The notes below the pieces were generated by a model. It made no database searches and was not told where the DNA came from. It saw only the letters and a program-made list of their open reading frames with translations. This document shows, piece by piece, positions 17,573-51,338 of a stretch of DNA of 64,000 nucleotides. Each line of letters begins with the position of its first letter. Position 1 is the stretch's first letter. Source of the DNA: Magallana gigas (lineage: Eukaryota); contig NC_088857.1 in the NCBI RefSeq assembly GCF_963853765.1, positions 44,268,001 through 44,332,000 of the forward strand, read 5' to 3'. The position numbers were made by a program, and so were the translations under genes.

Positions 17573-18694
17573 TTAGTATTGACACTTGCAGGGTTTGCCC
17601 TGGAAAAAAAAGAAGAAAATGTATCATAATCTACTTCAAATGAAAAAAAAAATGGAATATTTTCTTTTGAGTTCATTCTTACCATCTTCATTTCACACAC
17701 GTAGTAGTTTCTCTGTGCACAGCTATCAACATGCCAGTGATATTTGTAGCTGCTCCAGAAGATACCACAGTTATAGTCTCCTTTCTGATGGTACACAGGC
17801 TCGCCAGCATACCAGTCAAACTTGTGGCATCGTTTGTTGGAGAATCCCCAGCCCCATCTGTGGACGTTGGGATACAAACAGTCGTTCAAACCGAACCACG
17901 CCCCAGGGGATACTACAAAATTAAAACCATAACTTTTAAAACAACGCCCGATTTTCTTAATAAGCGTGAAAAAATTAGACTTGAAAAAAAAATGAATTGA
18001 AAAGAATTAGAACTGAAAATTCTTATAACACGTGTGTTTTCTTTGATTGTGTACGTATTTTTTTACCTTGGTACATAGACAGGTGATGTCTGATGTAAGT
18101 GTTCTCGTGAGCTTCATCAATGTTGCACAGAAATCCTCCCATTGAAGCACATTTCATCTGAAGCAAAGAAAATACGCTATTCTAATTTTTGTTCTGAAGT
18201 ATCATTTAAAATAAACTGACATTTGCATCAATGTATACTTTTATGAATGCGTATGTGAACAATTATGCTTATATGATACCGAAGCTTGCCACCAGCTCAG
18301 CCTGTCTCTGCTGAAGTAGTAACAGCTCTGGTGGTACTGGAGCCATCCGGGAGGACAGTGTCTGCCAGTGAGCTTTGCGGCAGCATAACCAAAGGCACTG
18401 TATTTGGGGGCATTATCATAGCTGGCATGGACAGCTAAAATAACCAATCGCATTGATGAAATTTTCAAAAAATATAAAAATTTGAAATCATTTACTTCCA
18501 TTGGTGGGAGAATACTAATACATTCTTAAAAAGGATTCAGCGACTGCACCTTTAGCATACCTTAGTTCATAGTTGCTGTATATTTAGAGATAATGTTGCG
18601 TTACTTTATTTAAAGCCATTTATTTTACAAAATCAATTTACTTGCACTTTTAAAGTATTGAAAATACATGTATATATGATCAGTCTTGTTTCAC

Positions 18695-18769
<75 letters not shown>

Positions 18770-18961
18770 CTGAACAAAGCTGCGTTTAAGAAGAAAAAAA
18801 TTAGTTTAACTTTATCTTCAAAATAAGCCCGCAGAAACACACATCTACAAATTTTAAGATATCATATAACCGACTGTTTTCTGATGGCCGGTAAACTTGG
18901 ACAAAATGACCTTACCTGCAAGGACCAACAAAAGGAGGGTGATTATAACGCAGTAATTCAT
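17573..18961 (-). CDS. Secreted C-type lectin-like protein, subfamily B copy B1 (pair 1), 182 aa
   Basis: Exons 18961-18916, 18434-18280, 18157-18067, 17912-17683, 17599-17573, all GT-AG. Signal MNYCVIITLLLLVLA; CPPGWLQYHQSCYYF...WFGLNDC...DSCAQRNYYVCE; ends GKPCKCQY. Confidence 0.92.
18697..18767. repeat. (CT)n microsatellite in B1 intron 1
   Basis: About 35 CT units, seen directly. Confidence 0.95.
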
Positions 18962-19282
18962 TGTTTCAAACTCTGTTGGAAACTGTGAATATTCTGTGAT
19001 TCCTACAAATATATACCTGTTCACAGCTGTGTGGGTTTTTTTTTTTTTTTTTTTCAATAGATTAAGCAATTATCTACGAATCTGACTTTGTGATTGTTAT
19101 GTATACTTATATCAAGTAAAATGAAGTACCTTTTGCTGATTCATCTTAAAAGAAGTGGATGCTCTTCATGGATTGCTTAACGAACATGATTTAGGCGTAA
19201 AATTACAATGTAAGTTAAAGTCAGAACTACTATAAATTCGCCGATAGTTTGCATTTGAATACCATACCGCAATACCTTCAAA
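18962..19282. promoter_or_regulatory. Putative bidirectional promoter, pair 1 (B1/A2), 321 bp
   Basis: Lies between divergent ATGs; TATA-like CAGGTATATAT on the minus strand toward B1 and CTATAAAT toward A2. Confidence 0.65.
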
Positions 19283-48589: not shown

Positions 48590-49779
48590 TTAATAGACAC
48601 AAACACATGGCTTTCCCTGAAAAGAGAATAAAACGTACAAATTGCAGCTGCAAAATTGTTCAACCTTTATAAACTTAAAAAAAATAACCGTCGAGCAAAC
48701 ATTTCAACTATTGTAATATTTTTTGTAACTGTTTGTTCTTACCAGTGGTTTTTCGCAAACATAGTGGTTCTTTTGTCCACAGCTGTCGACGTGCCAGTGG
48801 TATTTGTAGGACCTCTTGAACAAACCGCAGTTGTAGTCACCGTGCTCATGATACACGGGTTCGTTACTGTACCAGTCAAATTTGTGGCAGGGCTTGGCAA
48901 CGAATCCCCAGCACCATCTGTGTTTGTTGGGTCGCAGAATGTCGTTCAGGCCAAGCCAAGATCCTCCTCTTACTATTCAGTTAAAATCAATGTTAGGGTT
49001 ACAATCTCTGCTATCACATTATCTTGAGTACTCGAAATGTAGTATCGATGTTTAAACGTAATAGGTTTGGGTAAATAATCCACATACCTCCATAGACACT
49101 CAACATGTGTCTGACGTACGTGTTCTCGTGAGATTGGTCAATAGAGACCAGATAACCACCCATGGCGGCACATTTCATCTACAATTAACGTTAAGAATTA
49201 CCACCAATACCTCGGTGAAACATTTAATATCAGGTCCTATGATCTCTATCACTTACTGAGGCTGTGTACCAGTTGAGCTTTTGTCTGCTGAACCAATAAC
49301 AACGGTTGTTGTACTGATGCCATCCTGGTCCGCAGCCACTTGCTACAAATTTTGCTGCAGCATACTTAAAGGCGTGGTACTTTGGTGCAAAGTCATAGCT
49401 GGCCTCAGACACTGGCAAATAAAGGGAAAAGAAGATTATCATTGAGAGTGTTGTCTTCTGCCTACATAAATTTCAGATTCCGTTCGTTCTCCGCAATTTA
49501 TTCGTTTTTTTTTATTAATGAATATCCTAAGTAAACATTATTTTTTTTATTGTAGAAAATGATAATCACCGATAAGAATTTAGAAAATGTAAAAGAGAAA
49601 ACAGCATTATGTCTTACGTGTATATTCTATTGAAAGCATTATTTGATGTGTATTATTTTCATAATATACGATTTTCTTCAAAAAAGTAAGTTACAATAGA
49701 AAGTCAATATTTTAACAAATGGTGTCTTACCAGCCAAGAAAACACCGAGAGCAAGAGCAACTGCTATGGCTATGTTCAT
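48590..49779 (-). CDS. C-type lectin-like protein, subfamily A copy A6 (pair 5), 183 aa
   Basis: Exons 49779-49731, 49411-49257, 49178-49088, 48972-48743, 48616-48590. Signal MNIAIAVALALGVFLA. Confidence 0.92.
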
Positions 49780-50096
49780 CTTGGGACAAGTCCTGATTGG
49801 TGACTTCTGTCAAATTCATCTCGTTTTATAATGTTGACGACATCAGATCAATTTCACTATTTTTGCCCTATTCATGTATGTCAAATTAACCATAGTGTTG
49901 TTGACTTTTGCGCAAATTCAGCAATATAATCTATTGTAATATCTTATATGCAGTTAGGTACACTCCATTAATTTCGTTCATTCATTATAATGCGTTAATC
50001 CTTTTACATGCAGAGTAAAGCTGTTACGTTTAGCAGGTATATATAGTTCATAGTATTTGAAAAAGCAGAAATCAGTTTCCAAAAGATACTGGAGCC
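49780..50096. promoter_or_regulatory. Putative bidirectional promoter, pair 5 (A6/B5), 317 bp
   Basis: Divergent ATGs; TTTTATAATG, TCAAATTAACCAT, TTGCGCAAATTCAGCAA and GCAGGTATATATA present. Confidence 0.7.
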
Positions 50097-51338
50097 ATGA
50101 AGTCGTTTGTAGCAGTCGTTCTTTTGATTTGCCTTTGGGCAGGTAAAGTTCACCTTCTGACTCAAGAAATTTAATAATAGCTTCAAAAATAACAAAGATC
50201 GTGAAATCATTCCAGTTTTATGATTTGCACTAGAATATAAATAAATGCTATGTCTTTTTGTGTTTGTTTTCTTTTGGGGAATTTGAATTGTATAGGTCAA
50301 AATTTGAAGAAAAACAGTGAACTTGTAGGTCTAGATCAAGCGTGAGCATTTTAAGTTTTCTTTGAACTCGTGTAAATATGTATACCCATTCACATACGTT
50401 GTTGTTGATATTTCAGTTGTAAATGCCAGCTATGATAATGCCCCCAAATACAGTGCCTTTGGTTATGCCGCCGCAAAGCTCACTGGCAGACACTGTCCTC
50501 CCGGATGGCTCCAGTACCACCAGAGCTGTTACTACTTCAGCAGAGACAGGCTGAGCTGGTGGCAGGCTTCGGTACTATTCATACTACATGAACTACATAT
50601 AGATAATATTAGCAATTGACATTCAAAGTTCATTGTTTTTAGTTGAATATATCATTTGGTAAGGAATGATCCTTTACGGTGTAAAAACTTGATGTGTTTT
50701 TACTTTTAAAGTAAAAAAAAAAATTCTTCTAATTCAGATGAAATGTGCCTCTATGGGAGGATTCCTGTGTAACATTGATGAAGCTCACGAGAACACTTAC
50801 ATCAGACATCATCTGTCTATGTACCAAGGTAAAATACCCACATAAGTTTAAAAAACCACTTGCTGTATACTCCTATCTAATTCGAGTTTATTTCCGTATT
50901 TTTTTTTATTAAATAAAGCATAAATGGGATTGAAATACGTGTACTCAGTATACGATTTTAATTTTGTAGTATCCCCTGGAGCGTGGTTCGGTTTAAACGA
51001 CTGCTTGTATCCCAACGTCCACAGATGGGGCTGGGGATTCTCCAACAAACGATGCCACAAGTTTGACTGGTATGCTGGCGAGCCTGTGTACCATCAGAAA
51101 GGAGACTATAACTGTGGTATCTTCTGGAGCAGCTACAAATATCACTGGCATGTCGATAGCTGTACCCAGAGGAACTACTACGTCTGTGAAATGAAGATGG
51201 TAAGGATAACAATAATACGGATGACAGTGTTCACTGTTGTTGTCGGAATTTTCATTGAATCAACCTTGAGAACGAAATTAAAATTATACATTATTTTATT
51301 TTTATTTTCAGGGCAAGCCTTGCAAGTGCCAATACTAA
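50097..51338 (+). CDS. C-type lectin-like protein, subfamily B copy B5 (pair 5), 182 aa
   Basis: Exons 50097-50142, 50417-50571, 50738-50828, 50970-51199, 51312-51338. Signal MKSFVAVVLLICLWA. Confidence 0.92.

Follow-up and report, generated by a model that had tools for sequence, protein, structure and literature searches.

A head-to-head pair of C-type-lectin-like genes conserved in four oyster genera and multiplied in Magallana gigas: a candidate cassette for larval settlement

Why would an oyster keep two related lectin-like genes head to head, and multiply them together? This question is raised by a stretch of 64,000 nucleotides of Magallana gigas (contig C5, 44268001-44332000; hereafter the window, in which positions are counted from its first letter). 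It contains 11 intact genes encoding products that have a C-type-lectin-like domain (CTLD), which belong to two subfamilies, A and B, and which are arranged as five head-to-head A/B pairs and one solo A gene, A0. An earlier note on this DNA had proposed that A and B are the subunits of a secreted 1:1 heteromer. Based on the analyses described below, we consider it probable, with appreciable room for doubt, that the locus is a conserved cassette, co-regulated and amplified for dose, and that its two products act in one secretion. Direct binding between A and B is a narrower claim, and one about which we are distinctly more reserved.

The A/B pair, its copies and its age

Each exon of every copy was placed by similarity, after which the splice borders were checked. 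All 11 genes consist of five exons, with an unbroken open reading frame (ORF) and AG/GT borders at every intron. Exons 2 to 5 have the same sizes in all copies of both subfamilies (155, 91, 230 and 27 nt), exon 1 is slightly longer in A (49 nt) than in B (46 nt), and the products are 183 aa (A), 182 aa (B) and 181 aa (A0) long. Thus, the five pairs and the shared exon sizes described in the earlier note are borne out by exon-by-exon models, and its estimate of about 66% identity between A and B agrees with the 108 of 163 residues (66%) that are identical in the mature chains. Three features had escaped it: A0, which lies outside the range it described, a flip in orientation within the array, and the existing annotation of the genes, whose proteins are letter for letter those of M. 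gigas RefSeq entries named "perlucin-like protein". From left to right, the order is A0(+), B1(-)/A1(+), B2(-)/A2(+), a zone of repeat and transposon-like sequences, A3(-)/B3(+), A4(-)/B4(+), A5(-)/B5(+) and a WD40-repeat gene. Pairs 1 and 2 therefore have the arrangement B(-)/A(+) and pairs 3 to 5 the arrangement A(-)/B(+), which gives two inverted blocks. A whole-genome search of the rest of the 564-Mb, 29-contig genome identified a single relative, located on contig C9 and 49% identical.

Two lines of evidence support the claim that the pair, and not the single gene, is the unit of duplication. Firstly, homology between pairs runs continuously from exon 1 of A through the spacer into exon 1 of B; it spans both gene bodies and ends shortly past the stop codons, as exemplified by 42717-44419, which aligns with 48512-50161 through A, the spacer and exon 1 of B. 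Secondly, the matrices of synonymous divergence (dS) of the A copies and of the B copies correlate with each other (r = 0.86), a value reached in 6 of 120 permutations. The statement that the copies are almost identical holds for the proteins, since the mature B proteins differ at no more than two residues and A1 to A5 by about 0-9 nonsynonymous changes. It does not hold for the DNA, in which the M. gigas copies are separated by 10-23 synonymous exon differences (dS 0.09-0.29) and by strongly diverged introns. Ratios of nonsynonymous to synonymous divergence (dN/dS) of 0-0.14 indicate that every copy is under strong purifying selection, and this in turn argues for selection that favours a high output of two proteins kept unchanged. 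The proposal of dose amplification under purifying selection is therefore supported. Between A and B, synonymous sites are saturated and dN is about 0.29.

The pairing is not confined to M. gigas. Inspection of the loci around orthologues showed that the head-to-head A/B pair is present in four oyster genera, represented by M. gigas, Crassostrea virginica, Ostrea edulis and Saccostrea echinata, so that the synteny check proposed in the earlier note favours its view. O. edulis has the pairs B-/A+ and A-/B+, and S. echinata the pairs A-/B+ and B-/A+. In C. virginica the order is solo A+, B-/A+, A-/B+, B-/A+ and A-/B+, followed by the WD40 gene that adjoins the array in the window too (locus L004, 13159-18516), which makes the right border of the array syntenic; the solo A of C. 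virginica is situated at the same end of the array as A0. In a tree built from the peptides of exons 2 and 4, a single clade unites the A copies of all four genera (support 92/78) and the B copies group together (89/89), with two longer B-like proteins nested inside, while within the subfamilies the copies cluster by species. Taken together, the tree and the loci show that the A/B split and the pairing are older than the separation of these oyster genera. The multiplication would then either have occurred later within each lineage, or the copies have been homogenised within each.

Oysters also have relatives with a different architecture (L005 361-6141 and 10001-18232; L007 10001-12277, Saccostrea cucullata). 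They combine the same CTLD and the same C-terminal GKPCxC tail with extra N-terminal domains, which are Gly- and Cys-rich in P0009 and P0010 and strongly basic and rich in Tyr, Lys and Arg in P0083. These N-terminally extended relatives occur in tandem or singly, not head to head. P0083 and P0105 were considered as guides to the age of the pair outside oysters and were set aside as uninformative, because they are Saccostrea paralogues that are not arranged head to head.

The individual genes of the array are positioned as follows. A0 (9918-11593, plus strand) encodes 181 aa, identical to XP_034319651.2, in exons at 9918-9960, 10634-10788, 10867-10957, 11057-11286 and 11567-11593; a TATATAA box precedes its ATG by about 41 nt, and a similarity search for a decayed B partner near it gave nothing better than E = 1. 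In pair 1, B1 (17573-18961, minus strand; 182 aa, identical to XP_034319629.2) has its exons at 18916-18961, 18280-18434, 18067-18157, 17683-17912 and 17573-17599, and A1 (19283-20727, plus strand; 183 aa) at 19283-19331, 19837-19991, 20093-20183, 20300-20529 and 20701-20727. Intron 1 of B1, between 18435 and 18915, carries a long (GA)n microsatellite, which is absent from the other B copies. Pair 2 consists of B2 (24413-26197, minus strand; 182 aa, identical to XP_065941821.1) and A2 (26517-27951, plus strand; 183 aa), and pair 3 of A3 (35392-36638, minus strand; 183 aa, identical to XP_034318744.2) and B3 (36978-38312, plus strand; 182 aa, identical to XP_034318774.1). Pair 4 is formed by A4 (42798-44023, minus strand), with 183 aa counted from the conserved ATG, and B4 (44355-45626, plus strand; 182 aa, identical to XP_011414649.1). 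The RefSeq model of A4, XP_011414647.3, starts at an ATG located 10 codons upstream of the conserved start of the signal peptide. UniProt entry K1REI9 (P0037, 264 aa) carries a tandem duplication of residues 17-98 of a B4-like protein and is, by its sequence, a mis-assembled B4, an artefact of assembly or annotation at this multi-copy locus; models of 264-265 aa that resemble it are present in M. angulata and C. virginica.

Pair 5 is the one for which RNA joints were obtained, in run X2. A5 (48590-49779, minus strand; 183 aa) has exons at 49731-49779, 49257-49411, 49088-49178, 48743-48972 and 48590-48616, and B5 (50097-51338, plus strand; 182 aa, identical to XP_011414650.1) at 50097-50142, 50417-50571, 50738-50828, 50970-51199 and 51312-51338. 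The RefSeq model of A5, XP_011414646.3, starts within intron 1 (MIIFFSLYLP...); the RNA instead links exon 2 to exon 1 at 49731-49779.

The spacer and the transcription of both genes

If the pair is kept for joint expression of its genes, signs of this might be expected in the DNA between them. The ATG-to-ATG spacers of the five pairs are 321, 319, 339, 331 and 317 bp long, exactly as the earlier note had given them, and the starts thus lie 317-339 bp apart on opposite strands, well within the limit of less than 1 kb by which divergent pairs are defined. All five are AT-rich (GC 31-37%) and CpG-poor. Each contains two opposed TATA boxes about 200 bp apart: a TATAAAA-type box on the A strand, 51-52 nt upstream of the A start codon, and a TATATAT-type box on the B strand, 54-59 nt upstream of the B start codon. 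Spacer 1 (18962-19282), which is the most diverged of the five, has its boxes at 19009-19015 (B1) and 19231-19237 (A1). They are located at 26249-26255 (B2 side) and 26466-26472 (A2 side) in spacer 2 (26198-26516), at 36683-36689 (A3 side) and 36921-36927 (B3 side) in spacer 3 (36639-36977), and at 44068-44074 (A4 side) and 44298-44304 (B4 side) in spacer 4 (44024-44354). Spacer 5 (49780-50096) has them at 49824-49830 (A5 side) and 50038-50044 (B5 side), 51 and 59 nt from the respective ATG.

The seven pairs of C. virginica, O. edulis and S. echinata have spacers of 303-382 bp. Taken over all 12 pairs of the four genera, spacer length has a coefficient of variation of 6.5%, whereas the lengths of the four introns have coefficients of 27-68%. 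Of all 7-mers, only the two TATA motifs are common to at least 8 of the 12 spacers, and besides them no further motif conserved across genera was found in these spacers at the 7-mer level. Because every spacer contains two separate TATA boxes about 200 bp apart, the term "bidirectional promoter", which had been suggested for it, needs a qualifier: the short divergent spacer is there, a single core promoter shared by both genes is not. As predicted from these motifs, the spacer comprises two TATA promoters set back to back, which have a short upstream region in common, and we infer that A and B share regulation through it.

The transcription data agree with such shared regulation. In run X2, contigs span the exons of both A5 and B5, and coverage of the introns and the spacer is near zero. 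The joints of these contigs are located at 48972|49088, 49178|49257 and 49411|49731 for introns 1-3 of A5 and, allowing for shifts, at 50142|50417, 50571|50738 and 50828|50970 for introns 1-3 of B5; X2 can be identified as RNA because these joints fall on predicted intron borders. Intron 4 is supported in A5 by overhanging contig sequence that matches the next exon, and in B5 partially, by a loose end. Summed word depth, which is a rough measure of expression in which near-identical copies are pooled, amounts to 55,000-130,000 for the A exons and 33,000-98,000 for the B exons. Transcripts of A and B are therefore extremely abundant in X2, and of the same order of magnitude. By contrast, only 2-3 reads mapped to the pair from the polyA RNA runs X21 and X22, sampled at about 1.9 billion letters each. 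Since depth in X2 is huge and these two runs are nearly silent, expression is strongly sample-specific.

Words of both A and B were present in seven RNA-like runs from five studies (X2, X3, X4, X5, X6, X8 and X10), runs that had been located by means of these genes themselves and are thus biased toward carriers. Comparison of the whole pair (271 words) with the B half alone (115 words) gave estimated word shares of 0.12-0.32 for the A half and 0.25-0.31 for the B half, which demonstrates co-occurrence, not a constant ratio. The co-expression that the earlier note had put up for testing is thus seen within this limited sampling: both genes are spliced and similarly deep in X2 and nearly absent from X21 and X22. 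In run X1, which is otherwise DNA-like with contigs running through introns, one low-depth contig joins 49806 to 50386 and skips 579 bp (spacer, B5 exon 1 and most of its intron 1); this joint may reflect structural variation or a chimeric assembly.

Could the arrangement be a neutral by-product, produced by an inverted duplication followed by unequal crossing-over, with a spacer that has no shared regulatory role? The sparse conservation of the spacers across genera outside their TATA boxes would fit such an origin, and so would the divergence among the M. gigas spacers, which is about that of introns (73-76% identity). However, four genera have retained both the pair and the length of its spacer, in contrast to introns, whose lengths vary several-fold. 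All 11 genes have also remained intact, purifying selection on them is strong, and both genes are co-transcribed at a very high level. A purely neutral history thus appears most improbable to us.

The two products: partners, independent lectins or something else

Both products are recognised by the Pfam profile Lectin_C (44.5 bits for A5 and 40.8 bits for B5, with a cutoff of 22.6; profile positions 2-107 of 107). The cysteines of a long-form CTLD (CGPGW/CPPGW, CYWF/CYYF, MKCA, YNCG, DSC and YVCE) and the WLGL/WFGL motif are present in all 11 copies and invariant in the family alignment. The classical motifs of the Ca2+/sugar site are replaced in A, B and their orthologues of the four genera, which have EPV where EPN or QPD would be expected, and WHVD in place of WND; judged by these motifs, binding of sugars by another mode is still compatible with the sequences. 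The mature chains, of 163 aa each, are of the secreted type and basic, with isoelectric points of 9.1 (A) and 8.7 (B). They contain 10% Tyr, 5% Trp and 6-7% His, and N-glycosylation sites are absent. Identity between A and B is highest in the stretch CHKFDWY..EPVYH..GDYNCG..YKYHWHVDSC, and both chains end in GKPCxCxY, a tail encoded by the last exon of 27 nt. A monomer model of B5, based on an alignment of 19 sequences, has a mean predicted local distance difference test (pLDDT) score of 60.5; its core CTLD is fine, and the long loop (residues 107-144, pLDDT <50), the N-terminal segment and the tail are unreliable.

Taken strictly, the proposal of the earlier note would make A and B the obligate subunits of a secreted, covalently linked 1:1 heteromer, comparable to the snaclecs of snake venoms or to the clam lectin SPL-1, with a spacer that enforces equal dose. 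The strict A+B pairing across four genera and the near 1:1 gene numbers (five B and six A in M. gigas, four B and five A in C. virginica) are consistent with this proposal, as is the similar RNA depth of A and B in X2. Cysteines offer a possible means of linkage. Mature A has 10 and mature B 11 of them, four or five of which in each chain are non-canonical, including those of the CxC tail; this tail, on an exon of its own in both chains, could form interchain disulfides. Each subfamily also has cysteines of its own, RWC in A and FLC and NDC in B, which are conserved across genera, and the odd number in B is kept in the annotated orthologues of C. virginica and O. edulis as well. On the other hand, totals of 10 and 11 cannot all be paired in a simple 1:1 dimer, and on the whole these counts neither demand nor exclude a 1:1 heteromer. 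Moreover, the tail is not specific to the pair, because it also occurs in the unpaired relatives P0009, P0010, P0083 and P0105, and a solo A is conserved in two species. Charge complementarity is absent, as both chains are basic, and linkage of the SPL-1 type is impossible, since the mature N-termini (SYDFAPKY in A, SYDNAPKY in B) have no cysteine before the first one of the CTLD. Finally, the long loop by which the domain swap of snaclecs is defined has low confidence in the fold model of B. We therefore regard the strict heteromer as possible, though we doubt it.

Comparison with known systems is instructive in this respect. CTLD heterodimers are established in snake venoms, as in the snaclecs botrocetin, bitiscetin, agkisacucetin and flavocetin-A. 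Like the oyster proteins, these are secreted, paired CTLD paralogues that have lost the canonical sugar motifs and possess extra cysteines, and the best fold matches of the B model include snaclec chains, as do the sequence matches. However, the snaclec matches are no better than those of ASGR1, MGL and DC-SIGNR (E about 1e-7, 18-28% identity), and the lineages are unrelated. The top 50 matches of the fold search are a mixture of generic CTLDs and snaclec chains, and the 60 shown of 161 sequence matches in the PDB are generic CTLD matches only; SPL is absent from both sets.

Among bivalves, the clam Saxidomus purpuratus provides an example, its lectin SPL-1 being a heterodimer of an A and a B CTLD chain that are joined by disulfides (Unno et al. 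2019; review: PMC12842671, which is silent on how the SPL genes are laid out in the genome). SPL-1 and SPL-2 resemble the oyster proteins in being secreted, single-CTLD bivalve proteins with two related chains and non-canonical sugar-site motifs. They differ in their linkage: the interchain disulfides of SPL-1, A2-B47 and A4-B1, involve N-terminal cysteines (PMC12842671), whereas the oyster chains have a cysteine-free mature N-terminus and a C-terminal CxC tail instead. A further precedent for a heteromer comes from Caenorhabditis elegans, in which the gene pairs clec-27/35 and clec-26/36 have a shared bidirectional promoter, are co-expressed and require both members for function, a heterodimer having been suggested; 28 clec genes are organised in such pairs (bioRxiv 10.1101/2024.09.05.611528). 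In worm and oyster alike, neighbouring CTLD genes are co-expressed from one promoter region and the paired layout recurs. The worm proteins, however, are transmembrane pathogen sensors and their pairs have diverged, whereas the oyster proteins are small and secreted, and the same pair is repeated nearly unchanged, which points to dose rather than diversity. Divergent H2A/H2B and H3/H4 histone pairs and head-to-head collagen IV pairs likewise have a short shared spacer and are duplicated as a unit. The difference is that the products of those pairs are proven obligate partners.

As an alternative to the heteromer, A and B may be co-regulated and yet independent lectins, with different ligands or with homo-oligomers of their own, whose layout is kept by shared enhancers. 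That each gene has its own TATA box, and hence probably its own start site, would suit such independence. So would the antiquity of the distinction between A and B, which have been separate since before the genera split (dN about 0.29) and carry subfamily-specific residues, and the retention of a solo A in two species; the bivalve CTLD proteins codakine and SPL-2 are homodimeric (PMC12842671). However, the classical ligand-binding region is the very part that is most conserved between A and B, which argues against divergent ligands, and a stoichiometric need would account equally well for the near-equal gene numbers and depth. This makes full independence of the two lectins rather unlikely in our opinion.

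Indications of what the products do come from studies of larval development. Foulon et al. reported 59 C. gigas genes specific to the pediveliger stage, among them the consecutive "perlucin-like" CTLD genes CGI_10006917, -19, -20, -21 and -22 (EKC42164-68), whose levels in the mantle and other organs of adults are low (PMC6337334). The models were described as 44-48% similar to foot protein 1 of Atrina (apfp-1), and proposed as parts of the larval adhesive or of its link to the periostracum (PMC6337334). In addition, Trigg et al. found that the proteins of CGI_10006919, -21 and -22 are abundant at larval competence and then sharply down (PMC7574277). K1REI9, the mis-assembled B4 mentioned above, bears the name "Asialoglycoprotein receptor 2", which it shares with CGI_10006917. 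From this shared name and the sequence of K1REI9, the old CGI models probably correspond to the locus studied here. The all-or-nothing expression observed in the RNA runs fits stage-specific secretion, and a role in settlement would follow from the literature on what are probably the same genes. The likeness to apfp-1 consists in a C-terminal CTLD in an attachment secretion; unlike apfp-1, A and B have a CTLD only, without a repeat or a domain of the 3,4-dihydroxyphenylalanine (DOPA) type. In Saccostrea, P0083 joins the same CTLD and a GKPCKCRY tail to a long N-terminal domain rich in Tyr, Lys and Arg, of the adhesive-protein type.

A third possibility is that A and B are not settlement proteins at all, and that they are shell-matrix "perlucins" nucleating CaCO3, or immune lectins representing one of the many CTLD expansions of bivalves. 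The name "perlucin-like" of the oyster genes is automatic and derives from the perlucin of abalone nacre, which shares with A and B that it is a small, secreted molluscan CTLD protein. Bivalve CTLD families are hugely expanded and are mostly discussed as immune receptors (PMC10140915, PMC12842671). The proteins of the array, however, are near-identical between copies, unlike those of diversifying immune receptor expansions, their canonical sugar/Ca2+ motifs are replaced, and their expression is all-or-nothing between samples. The probable stage profile, low in adult mantle and other adult organs, also speaks against a function in shell nucleation (PMC6337334). Consequently, we judge a shell-matrix or immune function to be very unlikely.

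Combining these observations, we propose the following for the cassette with two products in one secretion. A and B are two old paralogous genes with small, secreted and basic products rich in Tyr, Trp, His and Lys. Their head-to-head spacer of about 320 bp, with some 200 bp of common upstream DNA, would place both genes under one local control, by which A and B would be switched on together and at a similar level. The cassette was copied whole: M. gigas has five copies and C. virginica four, each species with a solo A in addition. The products would most likely be abundant parts of one secretion made at larval settlement competence, in which they would act together; the candidates are the adhesive of the foot or of the cement, or the connection of this adhesive with the shell.

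Several points weigh against this proposal. First, a Mantel test on matrices of intron divergence showed no correlation between A and B (r = -0.23), so that strict co-duplication has the backing of the matrices of synonymous sites and not of those of introns; probably the introns are too diverged for global alignment. Second, co-expression is derived from one mapped RNA run and from indirect word shares in runs biased toward carriers, contig word depth being a poor measure of expression that pools near-identical copies. Third, the transcription start sites are predictions from the TATA boxes. Fourth, the CGI models have been matched to the locus through an annotation name and K1REI9, not sequence by sequence. 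Fifth, one A gene is without a B partner in two species, and pairing is thus not obligatory for A.

It is tempting to speculate further that A and B form a hetero-oligomeric lectin, cross-linked by disulfides through the CxC tail and the odd cysteine of B, which would be a main structural component of the larval cement. The TATA-to-TATA spacer would then fix a 1:1 ratio, and amplification of the cassette would have been a route by which the oyster lineage achieved the burst of adhesive needed for permanent cementation. We consider this extended scenario unlikely as it stands.

The surroundings of the array and the meaning of the cassette

The boundary between the two inverted blocks (30593-34548) consists of a 160-bp tandem repeat (30593-31533; 5.9 copies, 84% matches) and of intronless transposon-like ORFs of 297, 118, 93 and 198 aa, located at 31745-33344 (minus strand) and 33952-34548 (plus strand). 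A weak match to a Mutator-like transposase at 32147-32428 (E 1.3e-4) is below the cutoff of Pfam. The ORFs are probably the remains of a decayed DNA transposon. The WD40-repeat gene at the right border extends from about 54100 to 59300 (plus strand), its exon ORFs at 56183-56416 and 57183-57443 matching WD40 profiles. Just downstream of its exons there are two satellite-like arrays, at 59549-60890 (166 bp, 8.2 copies, 92% matches) and 60981-61774 (165 bp, 4.7 copies, 72%). At the other side of the window, 6392-6530 is a run of 139 N.

The earlier note knew of no account of such an arrangement in bivalves. As regards the layout this stands, given that our literature search found no description of the head-to-head A/B cassette, of its conservation across genera, of its TATA-to-TATA spacer or of its amplification as a unit; a search by RefSeq and UniProt accessions found no papers. 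It needs correction in two respects, because the SPL-1 heterodimer was already known (PMC12842671) and because what is probably this cluster had already been listed as pediveliger-specific (PMC6337334).

The larval cement of oysters has proved resistant to direct analysis of its proteins, and its composition has largely been inferred (PMC6337334). Against this background, the cassette provides a concrete candidate pair of proteins for the cement, together with a promoter module of about 320 bp for expression at the settlement stage. If A and B are partners, they would constitute a clear invertebrate example of a gene layout that fixes the subunit ratio of a lectin heteromer, and a second, independently evolved CTLD heterodimer in bivalves. 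If they are not, the locus would still be a clean case of a divergent gene pair that has been kept, and multiplied as a unit, over more than genus-level time.

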